NCBI GenBank assembly: GCA_002269645.1
Contig: NIVC01002320.1
Location: forward strand, 62,001 to 126,000
Direction of reading: 5' to 3'
Source: Macrostomum lignano
Taxonomy: Eukaryota
DNA length: 64,000 nucleotides
Shown: piece after piece, positions 9,291 through 52,242 of the stretch
How the letters are laid out: every line of letters begins with the position of its first letter
Position numbering within the stretch: position 1 is the stretch's first letter
Translations under genes and position numbers: made by a program
Notes under the pieces: model-generated
What the model saw: the letters and a program-made list of their open reading frames with translations, nothing else
Told to the model about the DNA's origin: nothing
Database searches by the model: none

Positions 9291-9400
9291 TTCGCAACCG
9301 AGCCAGCAGTTTTCACTCCAAAGCACAGCTGCTGCTGCTGCTGCTGTTTCAGTTGCCAAGGAAATCAAACACTGAAAGCTGCTCTTCCTCATCAGCTGTC

Positions 9401-12400
9401 ATGGCGCAGCTCTTGGCGCTGTGCGCTCTGTGTGCAGCTCTTTGTGCTCTTGGAGGCGGTGAGTTGTCTGTCTGCCTTCAATGTCAGATATATTGTAAGC
9501 CTTCATCACTCATGTGAAGCCCCTGCTCTCTTACAGCGGCGAGCTCCAACAAGTTCGACATCACGACAACAAACATCGCGGCTTCCTGGCAGTCGTCAGA
9601 ATACTTCAACAGGTGCTTCAGAGACACGGCTGTTCTTGAGCAGTGGGATTACTTTCACACAACGGGCACCCCAGACTCTCATGGATACCAGTGGCTGCTC
9701 ATTAAGCTGTCCCGTGCAATCCGTGTGCAATCAGTCACTGTCTATGGCAGGGCAGCAGGTGAGTTGTCTTGTCCACTTCTGTCTCTTCCGCTTCACTTCT
9801 TTCTTACTTCTCTTCTCACTGCAGAGCCCAGCAGAGCAGAGAAGATCGAGATTCTGCTGAGTGACAGACTGCCACCGGGTCTGAATGCGAGCAATGGCAG
9901 TTGCTATGGGACTCTGTCCGGTAGCTTGAGCTCGCTCACTCAGTGCGGAGTCACCCAGCGTGAGCAGACTCAGACTCACAAGGTGGCTTGCAGCTACTCT
10001 GACTGCCCGAATGTAGGTTTATCTCCATCTACTCTGTTGTTGCTGAGTGCAAATTGGTGCAAATAGGTGCGATTAGGACGTGCAAATAGGTTCGAATAGG
10101 AGGTGCAAATAGGTGTGATAAGAAGGTGCAAATAGGTGAAAATAGGTGCAAATAGGTGCAAATAGGAGGTGCAAATAGGTGCAAATAGGTGCAAATAGGT
10201 GCAAAAAGGTGCAAATAGGTGCGATTAGGAGGTGCAAATAGGTGCAAATAGGTGAAAATAAATTCAAATAGGTGCAAATAGGTGCAAATGGGTGCAAATA
10301 GGTGCAAATAGGTGCAAATAGGTGCAAAATGGCGCAAATAGGTGCAAATAGGTGCAATTAGGCGCAAATAGGTGCAAATAGGTGCAAATAGGTGCAAATA
10401 GGTGCGATTAGGAGGTGCAAATAGGTGCGATTAGAAGGTGCAAATAGGTGCAAATAGGTGCGATTAGGAGGTGCAAATAGGTGCAAATAGGTGCAAATAA
10501 ATTGGTGCCAATAGCTGCAAAAAATGGGTAAATCACACGAAATTTCAGGTGACTGAGTACATCTTGCTAAGGAAGAACGTTCGAAACGAATCTGATAAGT
10601 ACATGAACTTTCAAGCTCTGGAAGTCGAAGAGGGTACGACTTTAGTTGATTAAAGCTTAATTATGCCTTTATAGGACATTGTTGACTTTAAACAGACTTT
10701 CTCTCTTTCAGCATCTCAGAATGCGCAGATTTATAGGTGTGAAGTGTCTGGCAGAAACCTCAGTAACTGCAGACTCAATGCTTTGCAAACTTTGAAAAAT
10801 GGCGACAGAGTTTATATGAAAGTCTGCCCACCGTGTCAGCTTCCGACAACTGATGCGGCATCTTGTCACATTGCTGCTCCAAGTGGCAATATCACACAGC
10901 TGAGAGTTGTGAGCTCACGGATGAATTTATTTCTTTTAAAATGATTTTCACGGACTATTTGACTAAATAATAGGAATAAGTGAAATGAGCAATGATGAAT
11001 GTTAACACTTTATTTTTTATACGATTGTAGCCAGTTTCTTAATGTTCTTTCACCATTTTCAGCATGGGCACCCAGACTCCAATTTAATTGTAATCTTCAC
11101 ATCGACTGCGGAAAGTCAAGGAGGAAACTTCACGTGCAGCTTTGATTGCTTGAGCGAGTTGCCTCAGTCAGCAACTGAACCAATCGGTTTCTTTGGTATG
11201 CAGCTTTTGTGTGTACTTTTTACCTCAGACAGGTGAATTCGTAAAGCAACCTTCTACTGTTCAAACTGTTGTAATCTAGGATATTGGTATTTTGCTAGCA
11301 GCCTACTATCAGGTGCAGTACAAATGACACCCTAAAAGCAGGTTGCAGTGCAAATGACACCCTAAAAGCAGGTTGCAGTGCAAATGACACCCTAAAAGCA
11401 GGTTGCAGTGCAAATGACACCCTAAAAGCAGGTTGCAGTGCAAATGACACCCTAAAAGCAGGTGCAGTACAAATGACACCCTAGCAGCAGGTGCAGTGCA
11501 ACTGGCACTCTAGCAGCAGGTGCAGTACAAATGGTACCCTAGCAGCAGGTGCAGTACAAATGACACCCCAGCAGCAGGTGCAGTACAAATGGCAGCCTAG
11601 CAGCAGGTGCAGTACAAATGACACCCTAGCAGCAGGTGCAGTACAAATGACACCCTAGCAGCAGGTGCAGTACAGATGGCTGCCTAGCAGCAGGTGCAGT
11701 ACAAATGACAGCCTAGCAGCAGGTGCAGTACAAATGGTACCCTAGCAGCAGGTGCAGTACAAATGACACCCTAGCAGCAGGTGCAGTACAAATGGCAGCC
11801 TAGCAGCAGGTGCAGTACAAATGACACCCTTAGCAGCAGGTGGGTCATTTCACGAGAGGGTCGCATCATTTTTTGAACTTTAAGCACTTGTAACTTCTGA
11901 ACCATAATAGGTAAACAAAGCTGCAAAAAGCAATCTGTGTCAAACTTCTAGTTCTATCTTTTTCACAAAGCTGCTTATGAATTCTAAAACAACTGAACAC
12001 ATAGCAGAGCGTCAACCGTCAGCATAGTTTATGCTCTGCTATGTGTTCAGCTGTTGTCCAGGTGCAGTGCAAACGGCTGAGCTCATTTTCTGTTGCAGAG
12101 GAGAAGCCCAGAAGTGTCAGCATTGAGCCCAGCAACGGGGTTCAGATTGGATCAAGGATATTTCTGGCTCCAGGCACGGAGTTTCACTTCAGCTTCATCA
12201 CAGAAGCTGCGTACCCAAGTCCCATCCATGCTTGTAGGCTGGTGAGAACTGCTAAACGGGAAACTACAGAAGATACTTCAGGTGTTCCACTGTATCCCTT
12301 TACAGAGGTGAGAAAATCCTGTGCAATCTTAATACTTTCATTTCCCATTCTTATCTCGTCCCATTAAATTATTTTTCAGAGATCCCTCACTGACGCCTCA

Positions 12401-15400
12401 GCCAACAAAAGCCATGTAATTACCAAGATCTCTGAGTACAGACTCAACATTAGCGCACACAATGCAGCTGAGAAAAAGATACAGTGCGTGTCGGCTGTCG
12501 GTGAAAGCAGTGGAAAATCGGTGAAATCAATTTCGCTGCCTGAGCTTGTAGGTAAGCAAAAATATTGGAGGGAGAGTACTGGCAGGTGATACCTGGAATT
12601 TCTCATATTAGATGAAGATGAGTTGTATTGAAATGATAAAAACTGCAGTTCCAAGCAAGCCAGAGTTTCTGCTACCGCCAATCACGGACTGGAAAGACGG
12701 CCACTCCGTCTCAGTTGCTGTCGACTCAACAACAGACAGCCCTGTTCCAACCAGCCACCGCTGCTTGCTGGAGACTCGAGACGGCAACAGAAGTCTCAAC
12801 GCTACTCAAGTGAGTCTTGCTTTGGTTTTATGCCGTCGTGATGTCGGTTTCGAAAACAAAAACTTTGGCAAAATATTGAATGCGTTTCATCAAATGTCAA
12901 ATATTTGACAAACGTCATGGGCTGCTGAAGTGATTCATTCGGTGTTCTAAGCATGAGCATGTTTACTTTCTTTGAATAAATACGAAATTTCTAAATTGCT
13001 ACAAATTTCGAGTTCTCTTAAAACATTTCCTGTAGTAACTCTGAATCAGTCCATGAGTGTGTGTACAGGACTATCCTTCTCGCATGGTAGAGACTTCTCA
13101 AATCGAAATTCCAGGTAACAAATAAAAGCAGTAAATTCGAGTTGGATGTTGATAGACACTGGGGCAGCCCAGCATCTCTGGTCTGTTTGGTAAATCAATC
13201 TGGGCTGATCCAGACGTGGACTCGACATCGGCTACCGAAGGTGCTCTGTGAGTCTCTGATGCCATGACTTTCTTCACAAGCCTATTACTGCATTTGAAGA
13301 TTAAATCACGATTGCATTTTCGAATTCAGACAAGGCCGAAGGGCTGGCCATCCGTATTTCGTCTGGAGACCTGGTGAGTGATGAAGAAGCCAGCTTCTCA
13401 GTGACTGCATCTGACTCAGGATACCCAGCGGCTCTGCACCAGTGCAGAATCGAGAGCAAGAGCCTCGGAGAAGACAAGGTATGAGGCTGATGTTATTGCT
13501 CATTCAGAGTTCCCAGCCAGCAGTTCAATGCTACAATTTCGGTTGACCATTCCGCAGACTGCAGAGTCAGACGGCTCAACTCAGTGGAGATTCACGCCTC
13601 AGCGAGGGCACAACGGTGAAAGAATCAGATGCGATGTGGTGCAGAAACTGAGTGGCTCTTTGATATTCAGTCAGACTGTCAACAGCTCTAATCTGGATGT
13701 TAACTGTGAGGCTCATGCTTTAATCTGCTGCATGCTGTGATCCCGATCGATACAGTAGGGCTGCTTGCACTTCAGACAAGGCAACTGTCACGTGGCCCAG
13801 AAATATCGCTCCGAAAAAGGAAGGAGAGACTCTGTCATTCGTTGTGCTCGCAGACGGCAACCCAGAGCCCAGCAGTCAGTGCTGGCTGCAGCTGGTTTCT
13901 GGCTCACAGGTGAGTCTTTGATTTGGGATGATGCTGCTTTCTGGCTCACAGGTGAGTCTTTGATTTGGGAGTGATGCTGGTTTCTGGCTCACAGGTGAGT
14001 CTCTGATTTGGGAGTTATGCTGCAGTCTCGGTGTTTCATAATAATCACTATTCTCGTTCCAGGTAGACCTGCATAAGCTGAAGCATTCCATGTTTGAAAG
14101 CACCTTCAACGTCACTGTTGATAGGTCAATGAACCGAGCCAATTTGAGCTGTGTTTTGACTCAACCTGGACTTCCATCTTCAACGGAGCAGAGCTTCACC
14201 CAATTGATCACAGTATTTTGTAAGTTTACAGAATTCATTTTCATAGGGTTCATAAAGAGGTATACAATTTGTAAATGAGTGCGTATCATTTGAGCCAATG
14301 GAAACATTTCCTGTCGCTTCGGAGGCTCTGACTTGAAGCACTTCTTAACTCGTAGAGTGAAAAATAATATCGACCCAATCATCCTACAGATCAGCCTCAG
14401 CCTCCACTCACCATCGACTTGGCTCAGACTGTCTACGAAGGCACCGACGTCACCTTCACGGTGCGGTCGGGCGCTGGAAACCCCAATGTCACCCACAGAT
14501 GCCACGTGTACAACGGAGAAATTGTGAGCGCAATATTTGCTCATCAAATCACCTGAATTGCAGCTTTGGTTTAACACAGAGTTGATCATTCCAGGAAGTT
14601 CAAAACAGCATGAAAATCGAATCGGAGTACTTGACAATGGTGAACTATGCACCCAACAGTCATGACACATTTGTGAGCTGCACGGCCGAGCAGATGCACC
14701 GCTCTGATGTTGTGTTCACCAGCAGCATCAGAAGGAACATCACCGTCAATTGTGAGAAGTCAAATGCTATTTTATTAGCATGCAGCCTGCCATTGACTTG
14801 AAAACCGGAGTATCCACTTTAACTTCAGACTTTGCGCGCAACTCCATGGACATCAGTCCGAGAGAAGGAGTTGTTGCTGGAGATCGAGTCGAAGTGACAC
14901 TCAGCTCTTCTGGTGGCCGGCCTGCCGTCAATCAGCATGAGTGTTCGCTTGGAGGTTCTGAGCTGACAATGAAAAATGTATGCTTTTGAATTGACTGAAA
15001 CCTTCTTCAGGCATCCTAAATGATCAATTTGGGAATTTTTCTACAGGTAACAAGGCGTCCCACCGAAGTGAAGTTCACGTTTCGTGCATCGAAAGAGCAC
15101 CACGGCAAGGTGCTCGCCTGCAAATTCGTACAGGATGAGCGACTGATTGAGTGGAAGAGAGAGAAACTCAGCGTCCTCTGTAAGTACAGTTTGAGTTGTT
15201 TATTGGTGTGAAAGTATGGGGGTATTTTCTACTTTGAAAAGTAACTCGTTAAGCCACACTGATGTAAATGTGCACTGCTTTTTCGCACCTGTAGACAAAG
15301 CGGATTTCGACTCTGAGGTACGAATCATAAATAGAACAGTCAGGTGGAACACGACAGTCCAGTTCAGCATCTCCTACTCTGATGTGGGAAACCCGTCCGC

Positions 15401-17235
15401 CAAGCACTTCTGCAGCATCGGCTCTCGGCCACTCACCGATGCTGAGGTGCGAAAATACTGACCAACATTTTTGTGCCCGCTTTATGTAAGTAACAAGGTA
15501 ATTAGAGGTTGTAATGGAAAACATCTGAAAATACATTTCAGTCGGTTTCGGCATCACAAATATTGTTGCGTTGGAAGTTCAAGGCTCAAGTCGGAGACAA
15601 CGGTCAGAAGATCGTCTGCCAGGTGGTGCAAGATGATCAGCATGGCGGCCGAGTCTTTAACCAAACAGTTGCCAGCCAGACTCTGGATGTGCTCTGTAAA
15701 GATTTTGTTTATCAGTTGTATTTATTGCTTCAATCGAGCTATTTATATTTATTCCAATATATTGAACCACTTTGACTGTCACAACATTGTTTTCTTAATC
15801 TCTCTATCTTTTCAGACCCAGTCAGCTACTCAGGATTTCTATCCCAGCCACCGTCGGTGACGGAGGGCGATCCCTTGGTTATTTCTTTCTTCTCAACTGG
15901 AGGAAACCCCGAGCCTCGTCACCGATGCTGGCTGCAGACACCTGAAGGTCGGATGGACGCAGTCGCTCTAACAGAGGCGAGGACAGGTGTGGACCTCTTG
16001 ACGAACTTCAGTGTGACTTCCGTAAAGCAGATGAATGGAGGATCTGTGTCTTGCCGCGTCTCTCAGATGGGCCTCGAGGACCTGGACAATGAGTTCTCCC
16101 GCAAAATTAATGTTTTCTGTGAGTTCTCTGTCGCGACTGCTCCAATTTTTATAACAATACAAAATCTAATAAAAAAACGTTCGTTTTCCGTTCCAGTCCG
16201 ATCGGAGGTGGATCTGACCGGCTCAAAGATTTCAGGATCCACAGTGGTTGTCAGCATCAATGTGACGGATGGAAACCCGACACCGCTGGTGAACTGCTCG
16301 CTGCTCTCGAGCTCTGAAACTCGATATGTGGGTTCTCAGTGTGCACAGTTGCTCCGCTTCTATTTGCATTGAGTAGCTTTAATGCAGCCGAACCCGTCAT
16401 TTTAGGAGGTGTCCAGGAAGGACTCGACAATGCTGAGAGTCGGACTGCATGAGATAGAAGTCGATCTGCTTTTAAGAGAGCAGCCTCAGTCAGCCAACGT
16501 CACGTGTTCTGTGAAGCAAGACTATGCGGGTTTCAAAAGCAGCAGCCTTGTCTTTTTGGCACTCAAAGCTGACGAGAGTTTTCAAGCTAGCGACCAAGAA
16601 AGTGAGCAGTTCTGTGTAGTCCAGCTTAGCTGCATTACTAAACTATTGTCTTTTAAGTTAATCGTATTGTAATGTCTTATCATATTGCTACTATTGTATT
16701 ATCGCTACAAAAACTGATCAATGCAGACCATGGGAGCCTCAGCTGGAATCAAATGTTTCAAATTCTCTGTCTGTGCGCAGTGGTTGCCGTCGCTAGCTTT
16801 CTTTCTCTGCCTGCCACAGTCTACGTCTGGAGGCGAACTGCATCGCCTCGGTTGGGAATTCAGCGGCAGCACGGAGCAGCCACAGACAGGAGACCAGCTG
16901 ACGTACCTCTGGTCCCTGTGACTGCTGCTGAGCGAGATCCCAATGTAATATTGCTTTTCAGAATTGCTTGCTCATTTTGCTGTTTAATCTGTGTGTGAGG
17001 CTGACAATCTGCGGCACTTTTCAGACCGTCTACTACTATGAGGAGAACCCGGCGCTTCCGGATCGGCCTCCAAGCGTTGAGGAGACGGACTCAAATGTGA
17101 GTCTACTGTCTGAATCTTTGCCAGATGCTCTCAGTGCATGCTCACTGCAGGATTCAGTTCCGTTTATTGCAGATGGCGAACTGTTCTGAGGAGGAGCAGA
17201 CGGCTCAGGGAGCCATCGAATTCTACGTGCAGTGA
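9401..17235 (+). CDS. Receptor copy 1: signal peptide, F-type-lectin/F5-8C-like domain, 10 Ig-like domains, TM and Tyr/Pro tail (~1308 aa, 25 exons)
   Basis: Exons 9401-9458, 9537-9758, 9825-10016, 10712-10908, 11063-11195, 12099-12307, 12380-12551, 12649-12809, 13115-13247, 13330-13478, 13558-13705, 13776-13909, 14063-14219, 14390-14523, 14595-14751, 14829-14977, 15047-15179, 15295-15446, 15542-15695, 15816-16118, 16197-16327, 16406-16601, 16727-16944, 17025-17096, 17173-17235. All are GT-AG and phase-compatible, totalling 3927 nt with no internal stop. Signal MAQLLALCALCAALCALGG; TM MFQILCLCAVVAVASFLSLPATVYVW-RR. The exon 3/4 junction has an alternative phase-0 pair. Confidence 0.85.
10051..10520. 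repeat. 10-nt satellite (AAATAGGTGC)n in intron 3 of copy 1
   Basis: Direct tandem repeats; equivalent array at ~22921-23365 in copy 2; unexpanded in copy 3. Confidence 0.95.
11310..11843. repeat. 29/30-nt minisatellite in intron 5 of copy 1
   Basis: Unit CAGGTGCAGTACAAATGACACCCTAGCAG; also at ~24162-24546 and ~35847-36433. Confidence 0.95.
13891..14020 (+). repeat. 42/43-nt repeat of the exon-12 splice donor, 3 units (copy 1)
   Basis: TTTCTGGCTCACAG|GTGAGT with GT at 13910, 13952 and 13995. Confidence 0.95.
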
Positions 17236-17555
17236 AAGTGATTTGCAAGTTTGCTGCTCAGACTCTGTTTTGGAGAAAACGAAACTGCAGATACGAGAGA
17301 GAGTATTGGCTGACCGTGCCTGCTTATATAGGCTCACTGCATGCTTCCCAGGTTTCTGTGTATAAGACTGGCAATGCTTGTCAGACACTAAGTAGCGATA
17401 TCAAAGAAATATTTTTATTTTCTTTTCTGTCTTGCTGGATAATATTTAAAACAATAACTCGATTTTCTTGAGAATCAAAGATGTCGAATCGAATCAGTGC
17501 CGTCAGTCTTGTGTATGATGGTGACAATGCTCGTCAGGCGCTATGTACGAGGAGC

Positions 17556-18263
17556 GTTGCAAAGGTTTCCGGACTGTGTTTACTGTGAACGACATGAACG
17601 CCCACAACTCCTTGTACAGCTGCTCTAATGAATGAAAAAGCTGCAAAATGATTCGAACTTGTGAGCAATTTTTTTACAATTTATAACAGGTTACACATGG
17701 GCTTTGTTATAACGATTGGGAAATTCAAATTTATCACTTGCTATCGCCGTCTTACTACTGGCGGGGGCTACGACGCCGCGGTTAGGCCGCAAGGCCCCTT
17801 TCGCACGCTATCACCGTCACTTTCACCATTTTCCCCTGCCGCTGACATGCCAGGATGAAGTGCCGTTGGCTCTCCTTTGATCCATAGTTCGAAGGATTTT
17901 TGCTCCGTGCATTGCTTCGTTTGAGTGACCGAAAAATTAACAGCTTAAAAGTACAAGTTGCTCTGTGTACTGTGATATTCCATTAGCAGGTTGTCTGTGG
18001 AAAATGTTTTCAAATCGTTTTATAAAAGCCAGGCATGATTTTGCTCAGCATGTAGAATCGCTCACAGTTTGCTCACAGTTTGCTCAGCATCGCTCACAGT
18101 TTGCTCACAGTTTGCTCAGCATCGCTCACAGTTTGCTCAGCATGTAGAATCGCTCACAGTTTTACCAGTCAACAGAGCGCTGTGCAAGGAGTTGTGGGTA
18201 AAGTTTAGTTTATTCGGACATTGCTGTCGTTCACTGTAAACAGAGTCCGGAAACTTTTGCAAC
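17556..18263. repeat. Degenerate inverted repeat pair (17556-17626 and 18174-18263) downstream of copy 1; possible foldback/MITE remnant
   Basis: The reverse complement of the left arm matches the right arm apart from a ~25-nt insertion. The region is absent at the equivalent position after copy 2. Confidence 0.55.
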
Positions 18264-19287: not shown

Positions 19288-19300
19288 TGATGTGTTTGGG

Positions 19301-19347
<47 letters not shown>

Positions 19348-20299: not shown

Positions 20300-21654
20300 A
20301 ATATTATGACGAAAATATTTTATTTATTTTATTCACGTTTCGCTGTAACTTTCAGCATCGTCAGGTGACAATATTTGTAATAATTTGAAGGTAATAAAAT
20401 GAAAGTACGGGCCAAGAGTTTAAAAACGAGGTTAAAGTAGCCGTAGAATAGTCAAAAAAATTCTAAGAATAGTACTAGCCCCCTTCCTGTCAGTTGTACA
20501 TTCAGGGTAGGCTTTAACTGTTTGATGTACAGAGCAGGTATTTAGTTTGTGGTGGTGTTGAATCCGATCAATAATTTTAAACTTTTGATCATGTTTGATG
20601 TCGGCACACGCGTTGCACATTAGCAGATGGTCATGAATCGCGCTAGCCTTCTTGCGGTGTTCCTCGATCCTAGTGTACAGGTGTCGATCAGTCTTACCGA
20701 TGTACGACTGGCTCTGCTCAGCAGGGCAAACAAATTGATAGACGACACCAGCACACCGGGTGGAGGGTACTTTGCTTTTTAGGCTTGTCACAAAATTGGC
20801 CACCTTTTGAGTAGTGAAGATAACATCAATGCGTGTATCGAGACAGTCACGGCAGATATCAGTCAGGCTTTTTTTAAATTTAGTACTTGGCATTCCAATG
20901 TACGGAATACTGATGGTTGGTTTTCTTTCGGTAGAGGTAGAGTAAGTAACATTCTGGGGTCGTACTATAAAGCTGTCGTAGCGTAAGTTCGATCGTATTC
21001 GAATGCGTCGGAACTTTTACACTGCGGAGATGGGAGCTAAGAATGATCTTATCTTACGATGGCTTTATAGAACGGGCCCTCTGTTCTTTGGTAACTTTCT
21101 TATTGATGAAGGCATTAATCTCTGAGTTGATCAGGTCGTTTGGGTACTGTTTTTTTGTCAGGATCTTTTTGATCTTAGTTAATTCCTGGTGTAGGTTAGA
21201 CCAGTTGCTGCAAATGTTGTAGGCACGATGCAACATGCCTCGAATCAAACTCAGCTCCCAGCTTTTCGGGCACAGCGCCTGGAAATTTAGCAGCACTCCA
21301 GTAAACGTAGGTTTTCTGTAGACCGTTGTCTCCCAACGATTTGCATTACGGGTCACCATAGTATCAAGGAAACTCAAACAGTCATTTCCCGTTTCCGCAG
21401 TGAACTTGATGTTCTTATGAGTGTTGTTGAGCATCTTAAGAAAATTGTCACTCGAATTTCGGTCAAAAATCGCAAAATTATCGTCAACGTAACGGTAGTA
21501 CACCGTTGGTTCTGTTCTTCATGGGAAGTGTTGGATTGCGAAGGCCAAAGCGTAGTGCGTGTTTCTCAACGATGGTTAGCTTCCGGTTAGATAAATTTGT
21601 CACAGCGATCGGAGCATTGTTATGAGCCAAAAGATTGTTTAGCTTCTTTTCATG
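20300..21654 (-). mobile_element. Degenerate, internally deleted Penelope-like element (RT C-terminus plus GIY-YIG endonuclease)
   Basis: YYRYVDDNFAIF, IKFTAE, LSFLD and VYRKPT (21054-21503); VVYQFVC...SYIGKTDRHLYTRIEEH (20432-20893). The N-terminal segment is fused directly to RT motif C. Confidence 0.9.
20333..20368 (-). ncRNA. Degenerate hammerhead-ribozyme motif at the PLE 3' end
   Basis: Minus strand tcac-CTGACGA-t-gctg-aaagtta-cagc-GAAA-c-gtga. Core boxes and stems I and II are present; stem III and the NUH triplet are collapsed. Confidence 0.55.
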
Positions 21655-21659
21655 TTTTA

Positions 21660-21773
21660 GATTTGGGAGTGATGTTGCAGTCTCGGTGTTTCATAATAAT
21701 CGCTATTTTCGTTCCAGGTAGACCTGCATAAGCTGAAGCATTCCATGTTTGAAAGCACCTTCAACGTCACTGT
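21660..21773 (+). other. Displaced 114-bp fragment of receptor intron 12/exon 13 at the copy-2 duplication junction
   Basis: GATTTGGGAGTGATG...TTCCAG|GTAGACCTGCATAAG...AACGTCACTGT matches 14007-14119 and 39776-39929. Confidence 0.9.
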
Positions 21774-22268
21774 ATAGATTCGCTTTATAGATTCTGTGGA
21801 ATCGATATGGCAGCAATTTCTGATAATGATCAACACAAAAATAATAAAGTAACGAATATTCATATAGCAACCATCACAGTGAGCTATTTAAAAGCATATA
21901 TTATGAAATTACTAATCGCGCAGCACACTCAAATCTCATCTCGAAATTTTAGAAACTTCATTCATGCGATGCATTTAGAAATCACACTCTGTAGCTCTAT
22001 ATAGTACTCATAGTAGCTATTTACCCTAATTTGTTGGTCTTTTTGTTAGTCTTTTAAAACCTTACATAAATTGCACTTGTGTTCCACCAATGAAAATGGG
22101 ATTAGCGGTATTGAACCGTCAATCTTCACCAAACACGTGCAGTTTAACCCAGGAGAGAAATTTCGCAACCGAGCCAGCAGTTTTCACTCCAAAGCACAGC
22201 TGCTGCTGCTGCTGTTTCAGTTGCCAAAGAAATAAAAAACTGAAAGCTGCTCTTCCTCATCAGCTGTC

Positions 22269-30554: not shown

Positions 30555-32114
30555 AAGTGATTTGCAAGTTCGAGTTTCGCTACTCAGACTCTTGGAGAAA
30601 CCAAAACTGCATATATGAGAGCATTGGCTGACTGAGCTTGCCTACATAGTCAACAAACAAAGTCTCGGTTTCGATATATTATTTTTAAACGATGCTATCA
30701 AAAACGATGCACAATAATGGTTATTAATCTAGAATTGGAGTGGCGTTGGGCACGGGGCACAAAATGGGGTGGTGGGCTCACAAGGATGTACAATCAATAA
30801 TTCAATAGTTAATTAGTTCACGCACGCATTGGCGGTTAGCGTAAAATTTTAAAACAAGCCACAGGTACAGCGACAGACCCAGCGTTGCCTCAGACTCAGT
30901 GCATGCTTTCAAGGTTCCTGTGTATAAGACTGGCAATGCTTTCCAGACACTAAGTAGCGATAGCAAAGTATTTTGATTTTGCTTTTGGTCTTGCCGAATA
31001 ACATTCTTTTAACAATAACTCGATTAACTTGAGAATCACAGATGCCTCTGCTACAAATTAGCTATTAGAGCAGTCAAAATGCTAACAAGTACACGAGACT
31101 GATTTGCATAATTTTTGTTTTTTAAGAAACGGCCGTCAAGTTGCGATCCTCCAGTCTTTCTCGTCTGGCAGTCGGGATTGAAGCTTTTTTGGCCTGACTC
31201 AATGAGACAATGCCTGACAGAGCAACTTTGGAAGGCTTGCAGAAGTATTTAAATCACTTTTATAAGCCTTGGGTTTCTTTTTGTAGCCATTGGTGTTTGA
31301 TGAATGTCATTAAAATAACCTTTTCTACAGATCTAGTGCATATATTTGACATTTTAATCCGGTTTGAAGGCTCTCTAACTCACAGTATCAGTTTACTACT
31401 TAAAATGCTGTCTTCTTTGCATGATATTTTTGTAACAGGGTCTATGAAAGTTCAGCACGTGATCTACTGACCCATTACTTTATTAGTCACTCAGGAGCTG
31501 CACTTCAGTGTGTATCTCTTGCAAAGTGGAACTTGTGTTTGGCATCGGAACAAACAGATGCACCACCTCATCTCCTCTGCTTTAGCCGCTCGAAAACAAT
31601 GTTTTATCAAGATTACACACTTTGGCACCTACACATTGGCATTGAAGCGTGCAGTAGCGTGCAGTAGAAGTGTGCCGTCAGCCTAGTGCACTTGTCTGTG
31701 CTTAGAGTGACTGATTTTCTCTTCTTGGTTCGACGACTTGAATAGTTTATAATTCCATTTTGCAGGCTTCTCCGTTATGCCGTAAAGACGGTCTCTGATG
31801 AGAATGTCACCGAAGGTGTACTCGACCCGGAGGGTTGTGGTTCGGGCTGGGACTTCTGGCCGGCGATCTTGTATCCCGTATTTCAGGAAGAGTACCGCGC
31901 TCTGTGCTGCTTTGAGCTGCCATTGCGCTAGGTGAACCTACTCCAAAGACTACTCAAGTAGGACGGGAAACCTCGTTTCTTGGAAAATTTTAGGAGCCAG
32001 GTTTTCCCGAAAAAATACACTACGGAGATGGGAAGATCCTATCTTTCGATAGGAGGCAGACCTAATGTTCATTTTTTATGTTCTGCCTTTCTTATAGGTC
32101 TATTGATATTCATA

Positions 32115-32409: not shown

Positions 32410-34383
32410 ATCCTAGGCTTTGGAGATGTGTTCGGCGCCGGAGTGAAAGGCTCTCACCTGTTTGCGGCACAGCCCGGTGGTGCAATTGCTCTCCCAGTTG
32501 CCCACAGCGACCCTGCCTGAAGGGTAGTTTAGGCCAGAGGATGACGGTCTCTGAGGAGGCCGACCTGGTCCACTAAAAGCGGGTTGGCGGAGCCATACCA
32601 ATTGCAAGAAATAAAGAGCTTCGCAGTTAGGATCACCCAGAATCTCTCGCCCCTGATGGCGCCCAATCTTTGCCTCTTATGGCTATGGCTCACCCCTGCC
32701 TATCCAAAATTACTGCTCTCTTTGTGATGCAGCCCAAGCTTTGTGCTACGCAAAGGGGGATTCCAGTTTTTAGGTGGCCCGGGTCCAGTACCCATGGGGA
32801 ACTCAACCCACTATTCAAAAGGCAGAGCCAAATCCGTGCTTAGGCAACCCCGTTTAACAACAACAGCGGGGCCTGTGAAAGTTCAGCGGTTGGATCTACT
32901 GACCTGATACTTTATTAGTGCACTTCAGCGTTTTTCTCTTGCAAAGTGGAACTTGTGTTTGGCATCGGAATAAACTTTTTACAGATGCGAGATTCTGCAC
33001 CACCTCGTATCCTCTGCTTTAGCCGCTCGAAAACAATGTTTTATCAAGATTAGACTCTGCGAAACCAACGCATTGGCATTGAAGCAGTGTGCAGTCAGCA
33101 TAGTGCACTTCTTTGTCCTTGGAGCAACTGATTTTTCATCTTGGTTAGACGACTTGAATAGTTTATAATTCCATTCTGCAGGCTTCTCCGTTATGCCTTC
33201 ACTGATAACTTTGATAACCCTTACCAACTAAATTTCATCTAAACCTGCATCTCTGACTTGCGTGTTCACTGGCCTTCAGCTTTTGGACCTTCAACTGCTA
33301 TTTGAAGTTTAATAGAGTTCTGTCCAATTGCTGGTTGGACAAATAACCGAAGACGGAAGTTAATGACCAACACATACCAGAGACTGAAATTACTCGTAGC
33401 AGCACGGGACAGTGAATTTGAAACAGTTGGAAGATGGCTGCCCGAGGCGTCTTAAGAGCTTGCCTATTTTTAGAGACAGAACTGGACCTCTTCGTACACC
33501 ACGCGCGCTGAGAAGCCTAAATTATCGATCGTGCAACTGTTTGCGAAAGCGTTCAACGCACACAAGCGCAACAGATTAAGCGGCCCAATTGGGGAGCCAC
33601 CGCACGCAAAATTACACAGACAGACGATACGATGATTTATCTTACAAGTTATTTCAGACGCAGAATCTCGGTATAGCAGTTCCTTCTACTGGAAGTAATA
33701 AATGCGGAGTATACTTGTAGATTCTGAATGACGTGCAGAGTTTAATTTGTCACAGATAAATTTTGAGTTCGAAAATGGAAATAAAAAATCATTGGCCCGC
33801 ACAGTCGCTGCCATGTTCTGCGAGCCTCATCAAGCAACAGGCTTCACCCAAGGCACCCAAGCCAGCAGACGGGAGCATCCGGCCACCAGACTTTTGCGCT
33901 GATGGCGGGATTCAATACCGAATCACAGGCGATTACTTCTGATAAAAATGATCAATGCTAAAATAATAAAGAAACTACTATTCATATTGCAATCAGCACA
34001 ATGAACTATGGAATATGTAAAACAGTATATTATGCAATTTCCAATCGTGCAGCACACTCAAATCTCATCTCGAAATTTTAAAAACTTTTCATTCACGCGA
34101 TGGATTTCGATATCGCTCTCCGTAGCTCTATATAGTACTCATAGTAGCTATTTAACTTGATTTGTTGGTTTTGTCGAAAATGTATATAAATCACACTTGT
34201 GTTCCACCAATGAAAATGAGATTAGCGGTATCAAGACGTTAATCTTCACCAAACACGTGCAGTTTAACCCAGGAGAGAAATTTCGCAACCGAGCCAGCAG
34301 TTTTCACTCCAAAGCACAGCTGCTGCTGCTGCTGTCTCAGTTGCCAAGGAAACACTGAAAGCTGCTCTTCCTCATCAGCTGTC

Positions 34384-37300
34384 ATGGCGCAGCTCTTGGC
34401 GCTGTGCGCTCTGTGTGCAGCTCTTTGTGCTCTTGGAGGCGGTGAGTTGTCTGTCTGCCCTCAATGCCAGATATATTGTAAGCCTTCATCAGTCATGTGA
34501 AGCCCCTGCTCTCTTACAGCGGCGAGCTCCATCAAGTTCAACATCACGACAACAAACATCGCGGCTTCCTGGCAGTCGTCGGCATACAACAACAGGTGCT
34601 TCAGAGACACGGCTGTTCCTGAGCAGTGGGATTACTTTCACACAACGGACACCCCAGACTCTCATGGAAACCAGTGGCTGCTCATTAAGCTGTCCCGTGC
34701 AATCCGTGTGCAATCAGTCACTGTCTATGGCAGGGCAGCAGGTGAGTTGTCTTGTCCACTTCTGTCTCTTCCGCTTCACTTCTTTCTTACTTCTCTTCTC
34801 ACTGCAGTGCCCAGCAGAGCAGAGAACATCGAGATTCTGCTGAGTGACAGACTGCCATCGGGTCTGAATGCGAGCAATGGCAGTTGCTATGGGACTCTGT
34901 CCGGTAGCTTGAGCTCGCTCACTCAGTGCGGAGTCACCAAGGATGAGCAGACTCAGACTCACAAGGTGGCCTGCAGCTACTCTGGCTGCCCGAAAGTGGG
35001 TTTGTCTCCATTTACTCTGTTGTTGCTGAGCAAAGTGCAAAAGGTGCAAATAAATGGGTAAATCACACGAAATTTCAGGTGACTGAGTACATCTTGCTAA
35101 GGAAGAACGTTCGAAACGAATCTGATAAGTACTCGTACATGAACTTTCAAGCTCTGGAAGTCGAAGAAGGTACGACTTTAGTTGAATAAAGCTTAATTAA
35201 GTCTTCATGGGACATTTTTGACTCTAAACAGACTTTCTCTCTTTCAGCATCTCAGAATGCGCAGATTTATAGGTGTGAAGTGTCTGGCGGACACCTCAGT
35301 AACTGCAGACTCAATGCTTTGCAAACTTTGAAAAATGGCGACAGAGCTTATATGAAAGTCTGCTCACCGTGTCAGCTTCCGACAACTGATGCAGCATCTT
35401 GTCACATTGCTGCTCCAAGTGGCAATATCACACAGCTGAGAGTTGTGAGCTCACGGATGAATTTATTTCTTTTTAAATGATTTTCACAGACTATTCGACT
35501 AAATAATAGGAATAAGTGGAATGAGAAATTATGAATGGTAAAAAAATCGTGTTTTTATTCGATTTTAGCCAGTTCCTTAAATTTCTTTCACCATTTTCAG
35601 AATGGGAACCCAGACTTCTTTTTAATTGTAATTTTCATACCGACTGCGGAAAGTCAAGGAGGAAACTTCACGTGTAACTTTAACTGCTCGAACGAGTTGC
35701 CTCAGTCAGCAACTGAACCAATCGGTTTCTTTGGTATGCAGCTTTTGTGTGTACTTTTTACCTTGACAGGTGAATTCGTAAAGCAACCTTCTACTGTTCA
35801 AACTGTTGTAATCTAGGATATTGGTATTTTGCTAGCAGCCTACTATCAGGTGCAGTGCAAATGACACCCTAAAAGCAGGTTGCAGTGCAAATGACACCCT
35901 AAAAGCAGGTTGCAGTGCAAATGACACCCTAAAAGCAAGTGCAGTACAAATGACACCCTAGCAGCAGGTGCAGTACAAATGACACCCTAGCAACAGGTGC
36001 AGTACAAATGACACCCTAGCAGCAGGTGCAGTACAAATGGCAGCCTAGCAGCAGGTGCAGTACAAATGACACCCTAGCAACAGGTGCAGTACAAATGACA
36101 CCCTAGCAGCAGGTGCAGTACAAATGACACCCTAGCAGCAGGTGCAGTACAAATGACACCCTAGCAGCAGGTGCAGTACAAATGGTACCCTAGCAGCAGG
36201 TGCAGTACAAATGACACCCTAGCAGCAGGTGCAGTACAAATGGTACCCTAGAAGCAGGTGCAGTACAAATGACACCCTAGCAGCAGGTGCAGTGCAAATG
36301 ACACCCTAGCAGCAGGTGCAGTACAAATGACACCCTAGCAGCAGGTGCAGTACAAATGACACCCTAGCAGCAGGTGCAGTACAAATGGCACCCTAGCAGC
36401 AGGTGCAGTACAAATGACACCCTAGCAGCAGGTGGGTCATTCCACGAGAGGGTCCCATCATGTTTTTGAACTTTAAGCACTTGTAACTTCTGAGCCATAA
36501 TAGATAAACAAAGCTGCAAACAGCAATATGTGTCAAACTTCTAGTTCTATCTTTTTCACATAGCTGCTTATGAATTCTAAAACAACTGAAAACATAGCAG
36601 AGCGTCAACCGTCAGCATAGTTTATTCTCTGCTATGTGTTCAGTTGTTTTCCAGGTGCAGTGCAAACGGCTGAGCTCATTTTCTGTTGCAGAGGAGAAGC
36701 CCAGAAGTGTCAGCATTGAGCCCAGCAACGGGGTTCAGCTTGGATCAAGGATATTTCTGGCTTCAGGCATGGAGTTCCACTTCAGCTTCATCACAGAAGC
36801 TGCGTACCCAAGTCCCATCCATGCTTGCAGGCTGGTGAGAGCTGCTGAGCAGGAAACTACAGAAGATACTTCAGGTGTTCCACTGCATCCCGTCAGAGAG
36901 GTGAGAAAATCCTGTGCAATCTTAATACTTTCATTCCCCATTCTGATATTCTCATTAAATGCTTTTTCAGAGATCCCTCACTGACGCATCATCGAACAAA
37001 AGCCATGCAATTACCAAGATCTCAGAGTACAGACTCAACATTAGCGCACACATGCAAGCAGCTGGGCAAAAGATACAGTGCGTGTCGACTGTCGGTGAAA
37101 GCAGTGGAAAATCGGTGAAACCAATTTCACTGCCTGAGCTTGTAGGTAAGCAAAATATTGGAGGGAGAGTACTGGCAGGTGATACCTGGAATTTCTCATG
37201 TTAGATGAAGATGAGTTGTGTTGAAATGATAAAAACTGCAGTTCCAAGCAAGCCAGAGTTTCTGCTACCGCCAATCACGGATTGGAAAGACGGCCACTCC

Positions 37301-40300
37301 GTCTCAGTTGCTGTCGACTCAACAACAGACAGCCCTGTTCCAACCAGCCACCGCTGCTTGCTGGAGACTCGAGACGGCAACAGAAGTCTCACCGCTACTC
37401 AAGTGAGTCTTGCTTTGGTTTTATGCTGTCGTGAGGTTGGTTTCGAAAACAAAAACTTTGGCAAAATATTGAATGCTTTTCATCAAATGTCAAATATTTG
37501 ACAATCGTCGTGGGCTGCTGAAGTGATTCGTTCGGTGTTCTAAGCATGAGCATGTTTGAGCATGTTTACTTTCTTTGAATAAATACGAAATTTCTAAATT
37601 GCTACAAATTTCGATTTGTTCTCTTAAAACATTTCCTGTAGTAACTCTGAATCAGTCCATGAGTGTGTGTACAGGACTACTCATTCTTGCATGGTAGAGA
37701 CTTCTCAAATCGAAATTCCAGGTAACAAATAAAAGCTGTAAATTCGAGTTGGATGTTGATAGACACTGGGGAAACGCAGCCTCTCTGGTCTGTTTGGTAA
37801 ATCAATCTGGGCTGATCCAGACATGGACTCGACATCGGCTACCGAAGGTGCTCTGTGAGTCTCTGATGCCATGACTTTCTTCACAAACCTATTTCTGCAT
37901 TTGAAGATTAAGTCACGATTGCATTTTCGAATTCAGACAAGGCCGAAGGGCTGGCCATCCGTATTTCGTCTGGAGACCTGGTGAGTGATGAAGAAGCCAG
38001 CTTCTCAGTGACTGCATCTGACTCAGGATACCCAGCGGCTCTGCACCAGTGCAGAATCGAGAGCAAGAGCCTCGGAGAAGACAAGGTATGAGGCTGATGT
38101 TATTGCTCATTCAGAGTTCCCAACCAGCAGTTCAATGCTACAATTTCGGTTGACCATTCCGCAGACTGCAGAGTCAGACGGCTCAAGTCACTGGAGATTC
38201 ACGCCTCAGCGAGGGCACAACGGTGAACAAATCAGATGCGATGTGGTGCAGAAACTGAGTGGCTCTTTGATATTCAGTCAGACTGTCAACAGCTCTAATC
38301 TGGAGGTTAAATGTGAGGCTCATGCTTTAATCTGCTGCATGCTGTGATCCCGATCGATACAGTAGGGCTGCTTGCACTTCAGACAAGGCAAATGTCACGT
38401 GGCCCAGCAATATCCCTCTGAAAAAGGAAAGAGAGGCTCTGTCATTCGTTGTGCTCGCAGACGGCAACCCAGAGCCCAGCAGTCAGTGCTGGCTGCAGCT
38501 GATATCTGGTGCACAGGTGAGTCTTTGATTTGGGATGATGCTGGTTTCTGGCTCACAGGTGAGTCTTTGATTTGGGAGTGATGCTGGTTTCTGGCTCACA
38601 GGTGAGTCTTTGATTTGGGATGATGCTGGTTTTTGGCTCACAAGTGAGTCTTTGATTTGGGAGTGATGCTGGTTTCTGGCTCACAGGTGAGTCTTTGATT
38701 TGGGATGATGCTGGTTTTTGGCTCACAAGTGAGTCTTTGATTTGGGAGTGATGCTGGTTTCTGGCTCACAGGTGAGTCTTTGATTTGGGAGTGATGAGTG
38801 ATGCTGGTTTTTGGCTCACAGGTGAGTCTTTGATTTGGGATGATGCTGGTTTCTGGCTCACAGGTGAGTCTTTGATTTGGGAGTGATGCTGGTTTCTGGC
38901 TCACAGGTGAGTCTTTGATTTGGGATGATGCTGGTTTCTGGCTCACAGGTGAGTCTTTGATTTGGGAGTGATGCTGGTTTCTGGCTCACAGGTGAGTCTT
39001 TGATTTGGGATGATGCTGGTTTCTGGCTCACAGGTGAGTCTTTGATTTGGGATGATGCTGGTTTCTGGCTCACAGGTGAGTCTTTGATTTGGGAGTGATG
39101 CTGGTTTCTGGCTCACAGGTGAGTCTTTGATTTGGGATGATGCTGGTTTCTGGCTCACAGGTGAGTCTTTGATTTGGGAGTGATGCTGGTTTCTGGCTCA
39201 CAGGTGAGTCTTTGATTTGGGAGTGATGAGTGATGCTGGTCTCTGGCTCACAGGTGAGTCTTTGATTTGGGATGATGCTGGTTTCTGGCTCACAGGTGAG
39301 TCTTTGATTTGGGAGTGATGCTGGTTTCTGGCTCACAGGTGAGTCTTTGATTTGGGATGATGCTGGTTTCTGGCTCACAGGTGAGTCTTTGATTTGGGAG
39401 TGATGCTGGTATCTGGCTCACAGGTGAGTCTTTGATTTGGGAGTGATGCTGGTTTCTGGCTCACAGGTGAGTCTTTGATTTGGGATGATGCTGGTTTCTG
39501 GCTCACAGGTGAGTCTTTGATTTGGGATGATGCTGGTATCTGGCGCACAAGTGAGTCTTTGATTTGGGATGATGCTGGTATCTGGCGCACAAGTGAGTCT
39601 TTGATTTGGGAGTGATGCTGGTATCTGGCTCACAAGTGAGTCTTTGATTTGGGATGATGCTGGTATCTGGCTCACAGGTGAGTCTTTGATTTGGGAGTGA
39701 TGCTGGTTTCTGGCTCACAGGTGAGTCTTTGATTTGGGAGTGATGCTGGTCTCTGGCTCACAGGTGAGTCTTTGATTTAGGATGATGCTGGTTTCTGGCT
39801 CACAGGTGAGTCTTTGATTTAGGATGATGTTGCAGTCTTGGTGTTTCATAATAATCGCTATTTTCGTTCCAGGTAGACCTGCATAAGCTGAAGCATTCTA
39901 TGTTTGAAAGCACCTTCAACGTCACTGTTGATAGGTCAATGAACCGAGCCAATTTGAGCTGTGTTTTGACTCAACCTGGACTTCCATCTTCAACGGAGCA
40001 GAGGTTCACCCAATTGATCACAGTATTTTGTAAGTTTACAGAATCCATTTTCATAGGGTTCACAATGAGGTATACGATTTGTAAATGAGTGCATACTTTT
40101 TGAGCCAATGGAAACATTTCCTGTCGCTTCGGAGGCTCTGACTTGAAGCACTTCTTAAATCATAGACTGAAAAATAATATCGACCCAACCATCTCACAGA
40201 TCAGCCTCAGCCTCCACTCACCATCGGCTTGGCTCAGACTGTCTACGAAGGCACCGACGTCACCTTCACGGTGCGGTCGGGCGCTGGAAACCCCACTGTC

Positions 40301-42723
40301 AACCACAGATGCCACGTGTACAACGGAACAATTGTGAGCGCAATATTTGCTCATCAAATCACCTGACTTGTAGCTTTGATTTAACACAGAGTTGATCATT
40401 CCAGGAAGTTCAAAACAGCATGAAAATCGAATCGGAGTACTTGACAATGGTGAACTATGCACCCAACAGTCATGACACATTTGTGAGCTGCACGGCCGAG
40501 CAGATGCACCGCTCTGAAGTTGTGTTCACCAGCAGCATCAGAAGGAACATCACCGTCAATTGTGAGAAGTCAAATGCCATTTTATTAGCATGCAGCCTGC
40601 CATTTACTTAAAAACCGGAGTATCCACTTTAACTTCAGACCTTGCGCACAACTCCATGGACATCAGTCCGAGAGAAGGAGTTCTTGCTGGAGATCGAGTC
40701 GAAGTGACACTCAAATCTTATGGTGGCCGGCCTGCCGTCACGCGGCATGAGTGTTCGCTTGGAGACTCTGAGCTGACTATGGAAAACGTATGCTTTTTCA
40801 TCACCTGAGTGCTTTTGAATTGACTGTAAACCTTCTTCAGGCATCCTAAATGATCAATTTGGGAATTTTTCTACAGGTAACAAGGCGTCCCACCGAAGTG
40901 AAGTTCACGTTCCGTGCATCGGAAGAGCACGACGGCAAGGTGCTCGCCTGCAAATTCGTCCAGGATGAGCGACTGATTGAGTGGAAGAGAGAGAAACTCA
41001 GCGTCTTCTGTAAGTACAGTTTGAGTTGTTTATTGGTGTGAAAGTATGGGGGTATCTTCTACTTTGAAAAGTAACTCGTTAAGCCACACATTACTGTTTT
41101 CTGTGAGTTCTCTGTCGCGACTTCTCCAACTTTTATATCAATATAAAATCTAATAGAGGCTTGCAGTGCGTTCGTTTTTCCGTTTGCAGTCCGATCGGAG
41201 GTGGATCTGACCGGCTTAAGGATTTCAGGATCCATTGTGCTCGTCAGCATCAATGTGACGGACGGAAACCCGACACCGCTGGTGAACTGCTCGCTGCTCT
41301 CAAGCTCTGGAACTCGACATGTGGGTTCTCAGTGTGCACAGTTGCTCCGCTTCTATTTGCATTGAGTAGCTTTAATGCAGCTGAGCCGGTCTTTTTAGGA
41401 GCTGTCCAGGAATGACTCGACATTGCTGAAAGTCGGACTGCATAAGATGAAAGTCGATCTGTTTTCAAGAGAGCAGTCTAAGTCAGCCAACGTCACGTGT
41501 TCTGTAAAGCAAGACTATGCGGGTTTCAAAAACAGCAGCCTTGTCTTCTTGGCACTCAAAGCTGACGAGAGTTTTCAAGCTAGCGACCAAGAAAGTGAGC
41601 CGATCTCAGCTGCTCGTATTGGTTTTTTCAGCTAGCATGACTTTTTCTGATATTAAAATGTATAAGTGCATTATTTCACCGATTTCTCGTATTAAATAGT
41701 GCGTTGTCTCACACCGCCAAAAGCAGGAGGGTCGGTAGGCGGCGTTGTCGGCGCCACATTCGGAACGCTGTTGGCCTTGGGACTGGTCGGGGCCGCAATC
41801 CTGCTGCTGCTGAGAGCTCGGCGACTCAGGGCAACTGACCGACCCGACAATCGCAGCGGCTACTCCAACGGTAGAAGAGGAGCCAGTGGAGCTGCTCGAA
41901 CGGAACGAGAAAAGCAACAGCCTAGAAAAAAGCAGACCGAAGATCCCACGGAGACTGAGCTGCAGTTCATGGACAAGCACTATCTGTATCCGGTGAGATG
42001 ACCATCATGGGACTTTAATTAACAGATTCCTGATCCCACTGGAACAATTTGTATCCTTGAGCAAGACACTTAACTCTGCATTGCTTCAGTCACCCAGCTG
42101 TAAAATGAGTGCCAGCATTAGCTGGGGTAATTGAGGGGTGTATGACGACCCCACAGTCCTTGGGCTGAACAGCCGTACGCAGCCTTCAGATGCGCCGCGC
42201 AATAGCTCGGCGCAATAGGTTGCACGTCTGGCCCCCTGGGTCAGGTGTAATAAATTATTATTATTATTATACATCTGCAGCATCTCCCTAGCAATATCTG
42301 CAGCCTCTCTCTAGCAACATCTGCAGCATCTCCCCAGCAACATCTGCAGCCTCTGCCTAGCAACATCTGCAGCATCTCCCTAGAAGCATCTGCAGCATCT
42401 TCTCAGCAACATCTGCAGCATCTCCCTAGCAACATCTGCAGCCTCTCTCTAGCAACATCTGCAGCATCTCCCTAGCAACATCTGTAGCATCTCCCTAGCG
42501 AAATCTGCAACGTACCTATTAGCTGTAACCAACACCTACAGTATTCAAAAACTTGATACCATTGCAGAAGCCCCGCATGGAGTACGCTACGGTTGTCAAG
42601 GGCGAACTAATGGAAGAGACCAGCCTAGCCGACAGCACAGAGACAATCTACCTGACCATCGTGGGCTGCACACAGCCTGAGGATGACAAGGCGCCCACAA
42701 TGCAGAAATCTAAGGTCAACTGA
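34384..42723 (+). CDS. Receptor copy 3: signal peptide, lectin-like domain, 8 Ig-like domains, different TM and ITIM-like/ITSM tail (~1140 aa)
   Basis: Exons 1-17, 21 and 22 are open and collinear with copy 1; exons 18-20 are deleted. TM exon 41700-41992 (GGVVGATFGTLLALGLVGAAILLLL-RARR) ends at phase-0 donor CCG|GTGAGA. Last exon 42568-42723 follows CATTGCAG and encodes KPRMEYATVV...TETIYLTIV...KSKVN*. Confidence 0.8.
38500..39830 (+). repeat. 42/43-nt splice-donor repeat, ~31 units (copy 3)
   Basis: First GT at 38517, last at 39806. Confidence 0.95.
42277..42510. repeat. 23-nt minisatellite in the last intron of copy 3
   Basis: Unit AGCAACATCTGCAGCATCTCCCT. Confidence 0.9.

Positions 42724-51334: not shown

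Positions 51335-52242
<908 letters not shown>

Follow-up and report, generated by a model that had tools for sequence, protein, structure and literature searches.

What do three adjacent, closely similar genes of the flatworm Macrostomum lignano encode, and what might the proteins do? The genes lie in a 64,000-nucleotide stretch of DNA (contig NIVC01002320.1, positions 62,001–126,000; assembly GCA_002269645.1), hereafter called the window. An earlier note, written from the sequence alone, proposed that they form a cluster of paired receptors resembling the vertebrate Siglec, KIR and LILR families, in which a lectin-like head is carried on a stalk of immunoglobulin (Ig)-like domains. In many animals, self is told apart from non-self by receptors of the Ig superfamily (IgSF) or of lectin type that are encoded in lineage-specific clusters, and we know of almost nothing that has been learned about such recognition in free-living flatworms. 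The explanation that we favour, with a confidence that stops a little short of even, is that a Macrostomum-specific gene for a type-I membrane receptor was recently duplicated in tandem to yield all three. Their shared plan comprises a signal peptide, a membrane-distal head, a beta-sandwich domain, 7–9 C2-type Ig repeats, one transmembrane (TM) helix and a tyrosine-bearing cytoplasmic tail.

The head motifs singled out by the note (QWLLIKL and VYGR) are present exactly three times in the window, at positions 9689, 22560 and 34672, and the tail motifs YYYEE, PALPDR and EFYVQ exactly twice, at 17031–17218 and 30350–30537. All of these sites, and all features of the three genes given below, are on the forward (+) strand. 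Comparison of the window with itself using BLAST reveals three tandem head-to-tail units (8909–17299, 21781–30621 and 33947–41600) that share 92–97% nucleotide identity, introns counted, and are interrupted by intronic minisatellites. The cluster extends from the ATG of gene 1 at 9401 to the stop codon of gene 3 at 42723.

The M. lignano protein A0A1I8H8M2 (P0001), which maps onto exons 1–15 of copy 3 with three amino-acid mismatches, served as the anchor for the gene models. The copy 3 introns defined by this protein are all of the GT-AG type, with GTRAGT-like donor sites and (C/T)AG acceptor sites, and the remaining exons were assigned by projection between copies combined with a local GTRAGT/YAG splice-site rule. 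A generic metazoan position weight matrix for splice sites gave unreliable junctions and was dropped for exon calling in favour of this anchoring and the local rule. The motif counts, the self-comparison and the spliced models agree with the note's description of three tandem genes that share an ectodomain.

Gene 1 (9401–17235) is the intact, full-length member that the note had described as carrying YYYEE, PALPDR and EFYVQ. Its 26 exons are separated by introns that are all GT-AG, and they form a complete open reading frame (ORF) of 1335 amino acids. Following the signal peptide, an F-type-lectin-like head is encoded by exons 2–4 (9537–10633; residues 20–184) with the pattern FHT...QWLLIKL...VYGR...PSRAEKIEI. 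Exons 5 and 6 (10712–11195) encode an extra, cysteine-rich beta-sandwich of roughly 110 amino acids that sits between the head and the stalk. The stalk consists of nine Ig-like repeats, D1–D9 (12099–16601), most of which occupy two exons and have phase-1 introns at their borders. The TM segment MFQILCLCAVVAVASFLSLPATVYVW and the tail complete the protein (16727–17235), with YYYEE at 17031, PALPDR at 17049 and the C-terminal EFYVQ at 17218. Because every Ig repeat has phase-1 borders, the loss or skipping of a repeat keeps the reading frame.

Gene 3 (34384–42723) is also intact, with 22 exons and 1167 amino acids, and has the same head and stalk, except that repeats D7 and D8 are missing and that the TM segment and tail are new. 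An 846-bp segment of gene 1 (15260–16105) is absent from gene 3 at the junction 41089–41090, and this segment holds exactly three exons (609 nt) encoding D7 and D8, such that the frame is kept. The variation in stalk length pointed out by the note is accounted for by this in-frame loss of phase-1 modules. With the extra beta-sandwich included, the ectodomains contain ten Ig-type modules in gene 1 and eight in gene 3, in line with the proposed range of 8–10. Homology between gene 3 and genes 1 and 2 ends at 41600 (16607 in gene 1), just past the donor site of the last Ig exon. Beyond this point, two unrelated exons are predicted to encode a TM helix (GGSVGGVVGATFGTLLALGLVGAAILLLL followed by RARRLR; exon at 41700–41992) and a tail of 111 residues that ends in the last exon (42568–42723).

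Gene 2 (22269–30554) has the 26-exon layout and tail type of gene 1 and carries two frame-breaking lesions: a 2-nt insertion directly after the ATG (22269–22275) and a 34-nt deletion within exon 16 (27907–28029). These lesions identify it as the member that had been predicted to be truncated. Gene 2 is probably a pseudogene, or one that could be rescued only by skipping both D5 exons, an event that would bypass the exon-16 lesion.

Whether the head belongs to the F-type lectins was examined by profile and structure comparisons. A profile of the family head searched against the sequences of the Protein Data Bank (PDB) yields a sole match, the striped-bass F-type lectin FBP32 (3cqo; E=5.8e-5). 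Both lectin domains of FBP32 are matched, the arginines of YGR and PSRA align with those of the lectin NR and ERL motifs, and the gene 3 arginines R91 and R97 align with F-lectin arginines. AlphaFold2 modelling of the gene 3 head with its next domain (predicted local distance difference test (pLDDT) 77.9; predicted template-modelling score (pTM) 0.70) gives a structure whose top Foldseek match in the PDB is again 3cqo (E=2.6e-6); lower-ranked matches include eel agglutinin 1k12, discoidin II and SUN domains. Template-modelling scores are low because the two-domain model was searched whole. Furthermore, alignment of the head profile by hhalign to P0020, a Pfam-positive F5/8-C protein (90 bits), returns a probability of 91%. 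No match was found when a single head sequence was searched against the PDB by phmmer, nor did a Pfam scan match the paralogs P0007 and P0008. On the basis of these profiles and of a predicted jelly-roll fold, the head can be placed in the F-lectin/discoidin jelly-roll class as a strongly diverged member, which upholds the note's assignment to a galactose-binding-like or F-type lectin fold.

The linker encoded by exons 5 and 6 is cysteine-rich and all-beta, the gene 3 equivalent being modelled by AlphaFold2 at pLDDT 82–92, and has no match in Pfam. The stalk repeats reach the threshold of Pfam C2-set_2 (34.8 bits for the whole protein; 21.7 bits for D4 and D8). The AlphaFold2 model of D4 (pLDDT 80–90) matches Ig domains of CD4, NCAM2, nectin, LAR and Siglec-10 in Foldseek, and the repeat profile matches domain 2 of nectin-4 (E=1e-4); the model of D3 has low confidence, leaving D4 alone interpretable. 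By model and profile, the repeats of the stalk are Ig-like and of C2 type, as had been stated. They lack a B-strand cysteine, and with it the canonical B–F disulfide, and also the C-strand tryptophan. An invariant cysteine in an HxC motif aligns instead with the canonical tryptophan of nectin-4, and the F-strand cysteine is retained, which suggests that these domains are closed by a C–F rather than a B–F disulfide.

The stalk repeats are closest to the C2-type domains of nectin, CADM and NCAM, and this closeness would also fit ordinary adhesion of the Ig cell adhesion molecule or nectin-like kind. In such a scheme the proteins would serve tissue organisation or neural wiring, with a protein-binding, discoidin-like head and with tails coupled to the cytoskeleton or to generic phosphotyrosine signalling. 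A head devoid of the canonical sugar and calcium motifs, together with a gene 1 tail devoid of immunoreceptor motifs, would be expected of such molecules. However, adhesion molecules that act in development usually differ little between species and evolve under purifying selection, whereas this family is undetectable outside M. lignano, has a ratio of non-synonymous to synonymous substitution rates (dN/dS) of about 0.9, and has undergone duplication, conversion and pseudogenisation. We therefore consider a purely adhesive role unlikely.

The cytoplasmic tails were scanned for immunoreceptor tyrosine-based inhibitory motifs (ITIM; [ILVS]xYxx[ILV]), switch motifs (ITSM; TxYxx[VI]) and activation motifs (ITAM; Yxx[LI]x6-12Yxx[LI]). 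Consistent with the note, the predicted exons of gene 3 encode a canonical ITSM, TIYLTI (42643–42660), and an ITIM-like motif, MEYATV (42577–42594), located 22 residues upstream. Among shuffled versions of the gene 3 tail, 3% contain an ITSM (p=0.03) and 0.9% the relaxed motif pair (p=0.009). The tail of the M. lignano paralog P0008 ends with a canonical pair, VVYAQV and TEYTEI, spaced 27 residues apart (shuffle p=0.005), and has no detectable homology to the gene 3 tail. That such a motif pair turns up in two tails of unrelated sequence provides the strongest case for a function of these motifs. In the tail type of genes 1 and 2, whose exons in gene 1 have matching counterparts in the M. lignano model P0004, YYYEE adjoins PALPDR, a PxxPxR motif, and the two can tentatively be read as a docking site for Src-type Src homology 2 (SH2) and SH3 domains.

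How widely is this architecture distributed? A rough concatenation of gene 1 coding sequence matches only four of 5.8 billion proteins, all of them M. lignano entries named 'Ig-like domain-containing protein'. A vertebrate (fish) origin of the DNA, to which GT microsatellites and the ITIM-type tail might have pointed, is excluded by matches that are to M. lignano alone. Exhaustive HMMER searches of 1.84 billion representative proteins recover about 14 true relatives, again all from M. lignano, which form several subfamilies that are 35–44% identical to the query. A word-indexed search with the head alone returned two near-identical paralogs only, and the exhaustive search was needed to reach the divergent ones. 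Three further hits (P0016–P0018) were discarded as low-complexity or repeat artefacts. Among the relatives, P0008 (BOX15_Mlig012130g1; 804 amino acids) is the product of a singleton gene adjoining a PABP gene, and has the head, linker and Ig architecture of the cluster with 37% identity in the head. Model P0004 of the reference annotation continues past the tail of one copy into the head of the copy that follows it, which supports the tandem arrangement in a separate gene annotation. No additional members of the family were found in the rest of the window or in the neighbourhood of the P0008 gene.

Other models in the M. lignano protein set vary the same parts. In P0005 and P0006 (A0A1I8GPA9 and A0A1I8HM06), the head is joined directly to later Ig repeats, and the skipped modules (exons 5–6, or 5–8 and others) are phase-compatible. 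This pattern could reflect alternative splicing of a modular stalk or errors of gene prediction. P0013 (A0A1I8J207) apparently has two head-type domains in tandem, from which it follows that the species uses the head in other arrangements as well.

Literature searches for the family, its locus tags and the combination of an F-type lectin domain (FTLD) with Ig domains found no description, in agreement with the note's impression that the architecture was undescribed. In the literature searched, this is a new, lineage-specific, clustered family of IgSF/lectin recognition receptors.

Sequence divergence between genes 1 and 3 is almost equal in exons (4.5%; shared exons are roughly 95.5% identical) and in short introns (4.9%). 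This near equality, the two frame-breaking indels of gene 2, and the minisatellites and transposon remnants that fill the region are the features expected of a decaying young duplicate array, or of an assembly artefact, that has no current function and arose as segments were recently duplicated and rearranged in a genome that is rich in repeats and became polyploid not long ago. Several observations make this the least probable of the explanations considered here, and a very unlikely one. Genes 1 and 3 retain all of their splice sites and ORFs of 4.0 and 3.5 kb, which extend over 26 and 22 exons. The exons that they share differ by only two indels, of 6 and 3 nt, compared with eight in short introns of half the total length (Poisson p=2e-5), and the 137 observed substitutions, if placed at random, would leave no premature stop with a probability of 0.006. 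Moreover, the independent annotation contains the read-through model P0004 joining tandem copies, at least seven other distinct proteins of the subfamily are present, and the 37%-identical paralog P0008 retains the architecture. The in-frame exon indels and the lack of stop codons indicate that genes 1 and 3 were kept coding while their amino acids were free, or driven, to change. In keeping with this, dN/dS for the ectodomain is 0.73 between genes 1 and 2 and 0.90 between genes 1 and 3.

The copies have also exchanged sequence. Three-way informative sites are split 117:81:91 among the possible pairings, and their distribution is heterogeneous among segments (chi-square 97.6, 38 degrees of freedom, p=4e-7), a value reached in 0 of 5000 permutations. 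This pattern indicates that the copies are mosaics, as gene conversion or unequal exchange would produce; conversion was among the hallmarks of vertebrate paired receptors listed by the note. In an alignment of nine subfamily heads (three from the window and six from the reference annotation), 35 of 167 positions are variable, 27 of these 35 lie in predicted loops, and the same variants recur in different combinations from one sequence to another.

Such combinatorial head variation, in a species-restricted family whose dN/dS approaches 1 while ORFs are maintained, might also be the product of mating. The head would then act like the F-lectin repeats of oyster bindin in recognition between sperm and egg or between sperm and the female tract, and the divergence of its loops and the turnover of copies would reflect sexual selection in a hermaphrodite. 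F-lectins are indeed known to serve fertilisation as well as immunity (PMC5712786; PMC8878817). Set against this, proteins of the bindin type are secreted or acrosomal and have neither TM segments nor ITIM/ITSM tails, and the tyrosine-motif tails of this family point to signalling receptors. A role restricted to gametes or mating is accordingly doubtful in our estimation, to the same degree as the purely adhesive one.

Under the receptor explanation that we favour, the head would bind a ligand on another cell or on a microbe, most likely a glycan, by means of the two arginines that align with those of F-lectins, and the stalk would hold the head away from the membrane. Ligand engagement would lead to phosphorylation of tail tyrosines. 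The tail of gene 3 would then recruit a tandem-SH2 phosphatase of the SHP/Csw type and dampen signalling, as is well established for vertebrate immunoreceptors. The tail of gene 1 would dock Src-type SH2/SH3 proteins through YYYEE and PALPDR, and would thereby give a different, possibly activating, output. With respect to biological role, gamete recognition or adhesion would fit such a receptor no less well than an immune or allorecognition function would.

A number of findings weigh against this explanation. The head scores below threshold with Pfam F5_F8_type_C (16.6 bits; cut-off 28.2) and with F5_F8_type_C_2 (14.0 bits; cut-off 27.8). F-type lectins bind fucose through the motif HX24RXDX4(R/K) and carry a calcium motif, h2DGx (PMC5712786). 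The first is missing from the head, which has R-x5-R spacing, an acidic residue at +3 and its FHT histidine 30 residues upstream (a histidine replaced by leucine in one paralog). For the second, alignments of the family and with FBP32 reveal no DG in the corresponding segment, NRCFRDTAVLEQW. These departures from the canonical motifs mean that sugar binding by the head, plausible as it is, may be altered or lost. With methionine at position −2, MEYATV departs from the canonical ITIM. Both exons for the TM segment and tail of gene 3 are predicted from ORF, splice-site and topology logic, and a protein search with the gene 3 tail found no database protein that covers them. Gene 2 is disrupted. 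For the head, dN/dS exceeds 1, but the underlying counts (3 synonymous versus 12–16 non-synonymous changes) are not significant, and a dN/dS near 1 also fits relaxed constraint. A claim of positive selection on the head was rejected on these counts.

The paired-receptor idea itself is weakened by gene 1. Its tail, like that of gene 2, contains no ITIM, ITSM or ITAM in our motif scan, and its TM segment contains no K, R, D or E, such that the activating half of a pair of the KIR/LILR type is missing. Thus, one ectodomain is combined with a different tail in each of genes 1 and 3, whereas opposing tails of the kind that the note invoked as a parallel are unsupported, and opposite signalling by the two genes is conjecture. 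The most elaborate proposal is an independently evolved flatworm counterpart of the Siglec/KIR system: a polymorphic, gene-converting, glycan-sensing cluster, in which one ectodomain has been joined by exon swapping to either an SHP-recruiting or a Src-docking tail for balanced inhibitory and activating sensing of self and non-self or of microbes. We regard this full version as improbable, no more so and no less so than the adhesion and mating alternatives.

Several repeats lie within the introns of the genes. A 43-bp minisatellite occupies intron 13 of all three (gene 1, 13891–14022, 3 copies; gene 2, 26604–27334, 17 copies; gene 3, 38498–39829, 31 copies). Its unit includes the final 19 nt of exon 13 together with a GTGAGT donor site, and therefore genes 1, 2 and 3 carry roughly 3, 17 and 31 consensus splice donors in tandem. 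If a downstream copy of the donor were used, it would add 43 nt and shift the frame. A 29-bp minisatellite is located in intron 6 (11310–11842 in gene 1; also 24162–24547 and 35847–36434). Intron 3 of genes 1 and 2 is filled by about 43 copies of the 10-bp repeat GTGCAAATAG (10047–10499 and 22918–23372), and intron 3 of gene 3 is only 83 bp long and does not contain this repeat. A 65-bp fragment at 21709–21773, directly preceding the start of the second unit at 21781, matches, with 100% identity, the beginning of exon 14 in gene 1 and the 9 nt of intron that precede it, and may be the scar of a duplication or rearrangement.

The surrounding DNA is likewise rich in repeats and mobile elements. 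Just upstream of the cluster, at 4020–8097 (+), lies the interior of a Ty3/gypsy-type long terminal repeat retrotransposon, with three overlapping ORFs that encode a gag zinc knuckle, aspartyl protease, reverse transcriptase, RNase H and integrase. Further upstream, segment 1–3433 has a strong GC skew (+0.3 to +0.37) and an internal duplication (1–747 versus 1935–2669, 91%; 767–1465 versus 2729–3433, 77%). The spacer between genes 1 and 2 contains an ORF on the reverse (−) strand (20432–20893) with a near-threshold match to a GIY-YIG nuclease (22.1 bits; cut-off 22.6) that may be the remnant of a Penelope-like element. Downstream of the cluster, 46429–56231 is dense in long minisatellite arrays, at 46429–46846, 47640–48057, 48884–49246, 49579–50538, 53105–54364, 54872–55320 and 55793–56231. 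An intronless, proline/glutamine-rich ORF of 552 codons on the reverse strand (56331–57989) coincides with an island of 65% GC, has no Pfam match and may be a real gene.

What would a receptor family of this kind mean? The order of head, Ig stalk, TM segment and tail is unreported in the literature searched, and it has been missed by domain databases, in which the head has no significant Pfam match. Within one small region, receptor diversity can be seen to arise from the loss of phase-1 modules, the swapping of tail exons, conversion between genes and pseudogenisation. If the tails signal as their motifs suggest, the cluster would represent a convergent use of paired-receptor logic in Spiralia. 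M. lignano is amenable to RNA interference and transgenesis, which makes the hypothesis directly testable.

The vertebrate Siglec/CD33-related, KIR and LILR families offer the closest overall parallel. They too form tandem multigene clusters, in which the recognition domain lies distally and is carried by a C2-type Ig stalk that varies in length. Ectodomains that are nearly identical are there attached to unrelated TM segments and tails, as they are in the linked genes 1 and 3, and, as predicted for gene 3, a member has a membrane-distal ITIM-like motif and an ITSM about 22 residues apart. Pseudogenes and patchwork sequence exchange are likewise common to both. However, homology is limited to the generic Ig fold, and the flatworm head is a jelly-roll of the predicted F-lectin fold rather than the N-terminal V-set Ig domain of Siglecs with its sialic-acid-binding arginine. 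An activating member of the KIR/LILR kind, with a charged TM segment or an ITAM (DAP12/FcRgamma-type logic), is not visible in the long-tailed gene 1, and the ITIM-like motif of gene 3 differs by its methionine at −2.

Among invertebrates, the Alr proteins of Hydractinia and the fester and uncle fester proteins of Botryllus (PMC9546547, PMC12582321) are also lineage-specific, clustered IgSF type-I membrane proteins with accompanying pseudogenes, with highly divergent cytoplasmic tails, some of which have an ITIM or ITAM, and with alternative or in-frame variation of domains. They have no sequence relationship to the M. lignano family and begin with V-set or I-set Ig domains, or short consensus repeats (SCR), rather than a lectin-fold head. 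Their role in allorecognition was shown genetically, whereas M. lignano, for which such a role is a proposal, is solitary and non-colonial.

With F-type lectins (1k12 and FBP32 3cqo), the head shares the predicted jelly-roll, the core pattern WQSS...W..L.L...V..V.V..R....R...IE and two aligned basic residues of the sugar-binding triad. It differs in its sub-threshold Pfam and SMART scores, in having R-x5-R in place of RxDx4R and the histidine at 30 rather than 24, and in lacking h2DGx. A review lists C-type lectin (CTL), pentraxin, complement control protein (CCP), TM and FA58C domains as partners of FTLDs, and Ig is not in its list (PMC5712786). The nearest match is Drosophila furrowed, a TM protein whose FTLD sits atop a long stalk of repeating modules (PMC5712786), although that stalk is built of CCP modules and the M. 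lignano stalk of Ig repeats. Finally, the gastropod VIgL proteins (FREP, CREP, GREP, QREP and HREP) likewise combine IgSF and lectin-type domains in expanded, diversified and lineage-restricted families. These proteins are secreted, with the Ig domains N-terminal and the lectin domain C-terminal (PMC8878817), whereas the M. lignano proteins reverse this order, are anchored by a TM segment and end in tails with tyrosine motifs.

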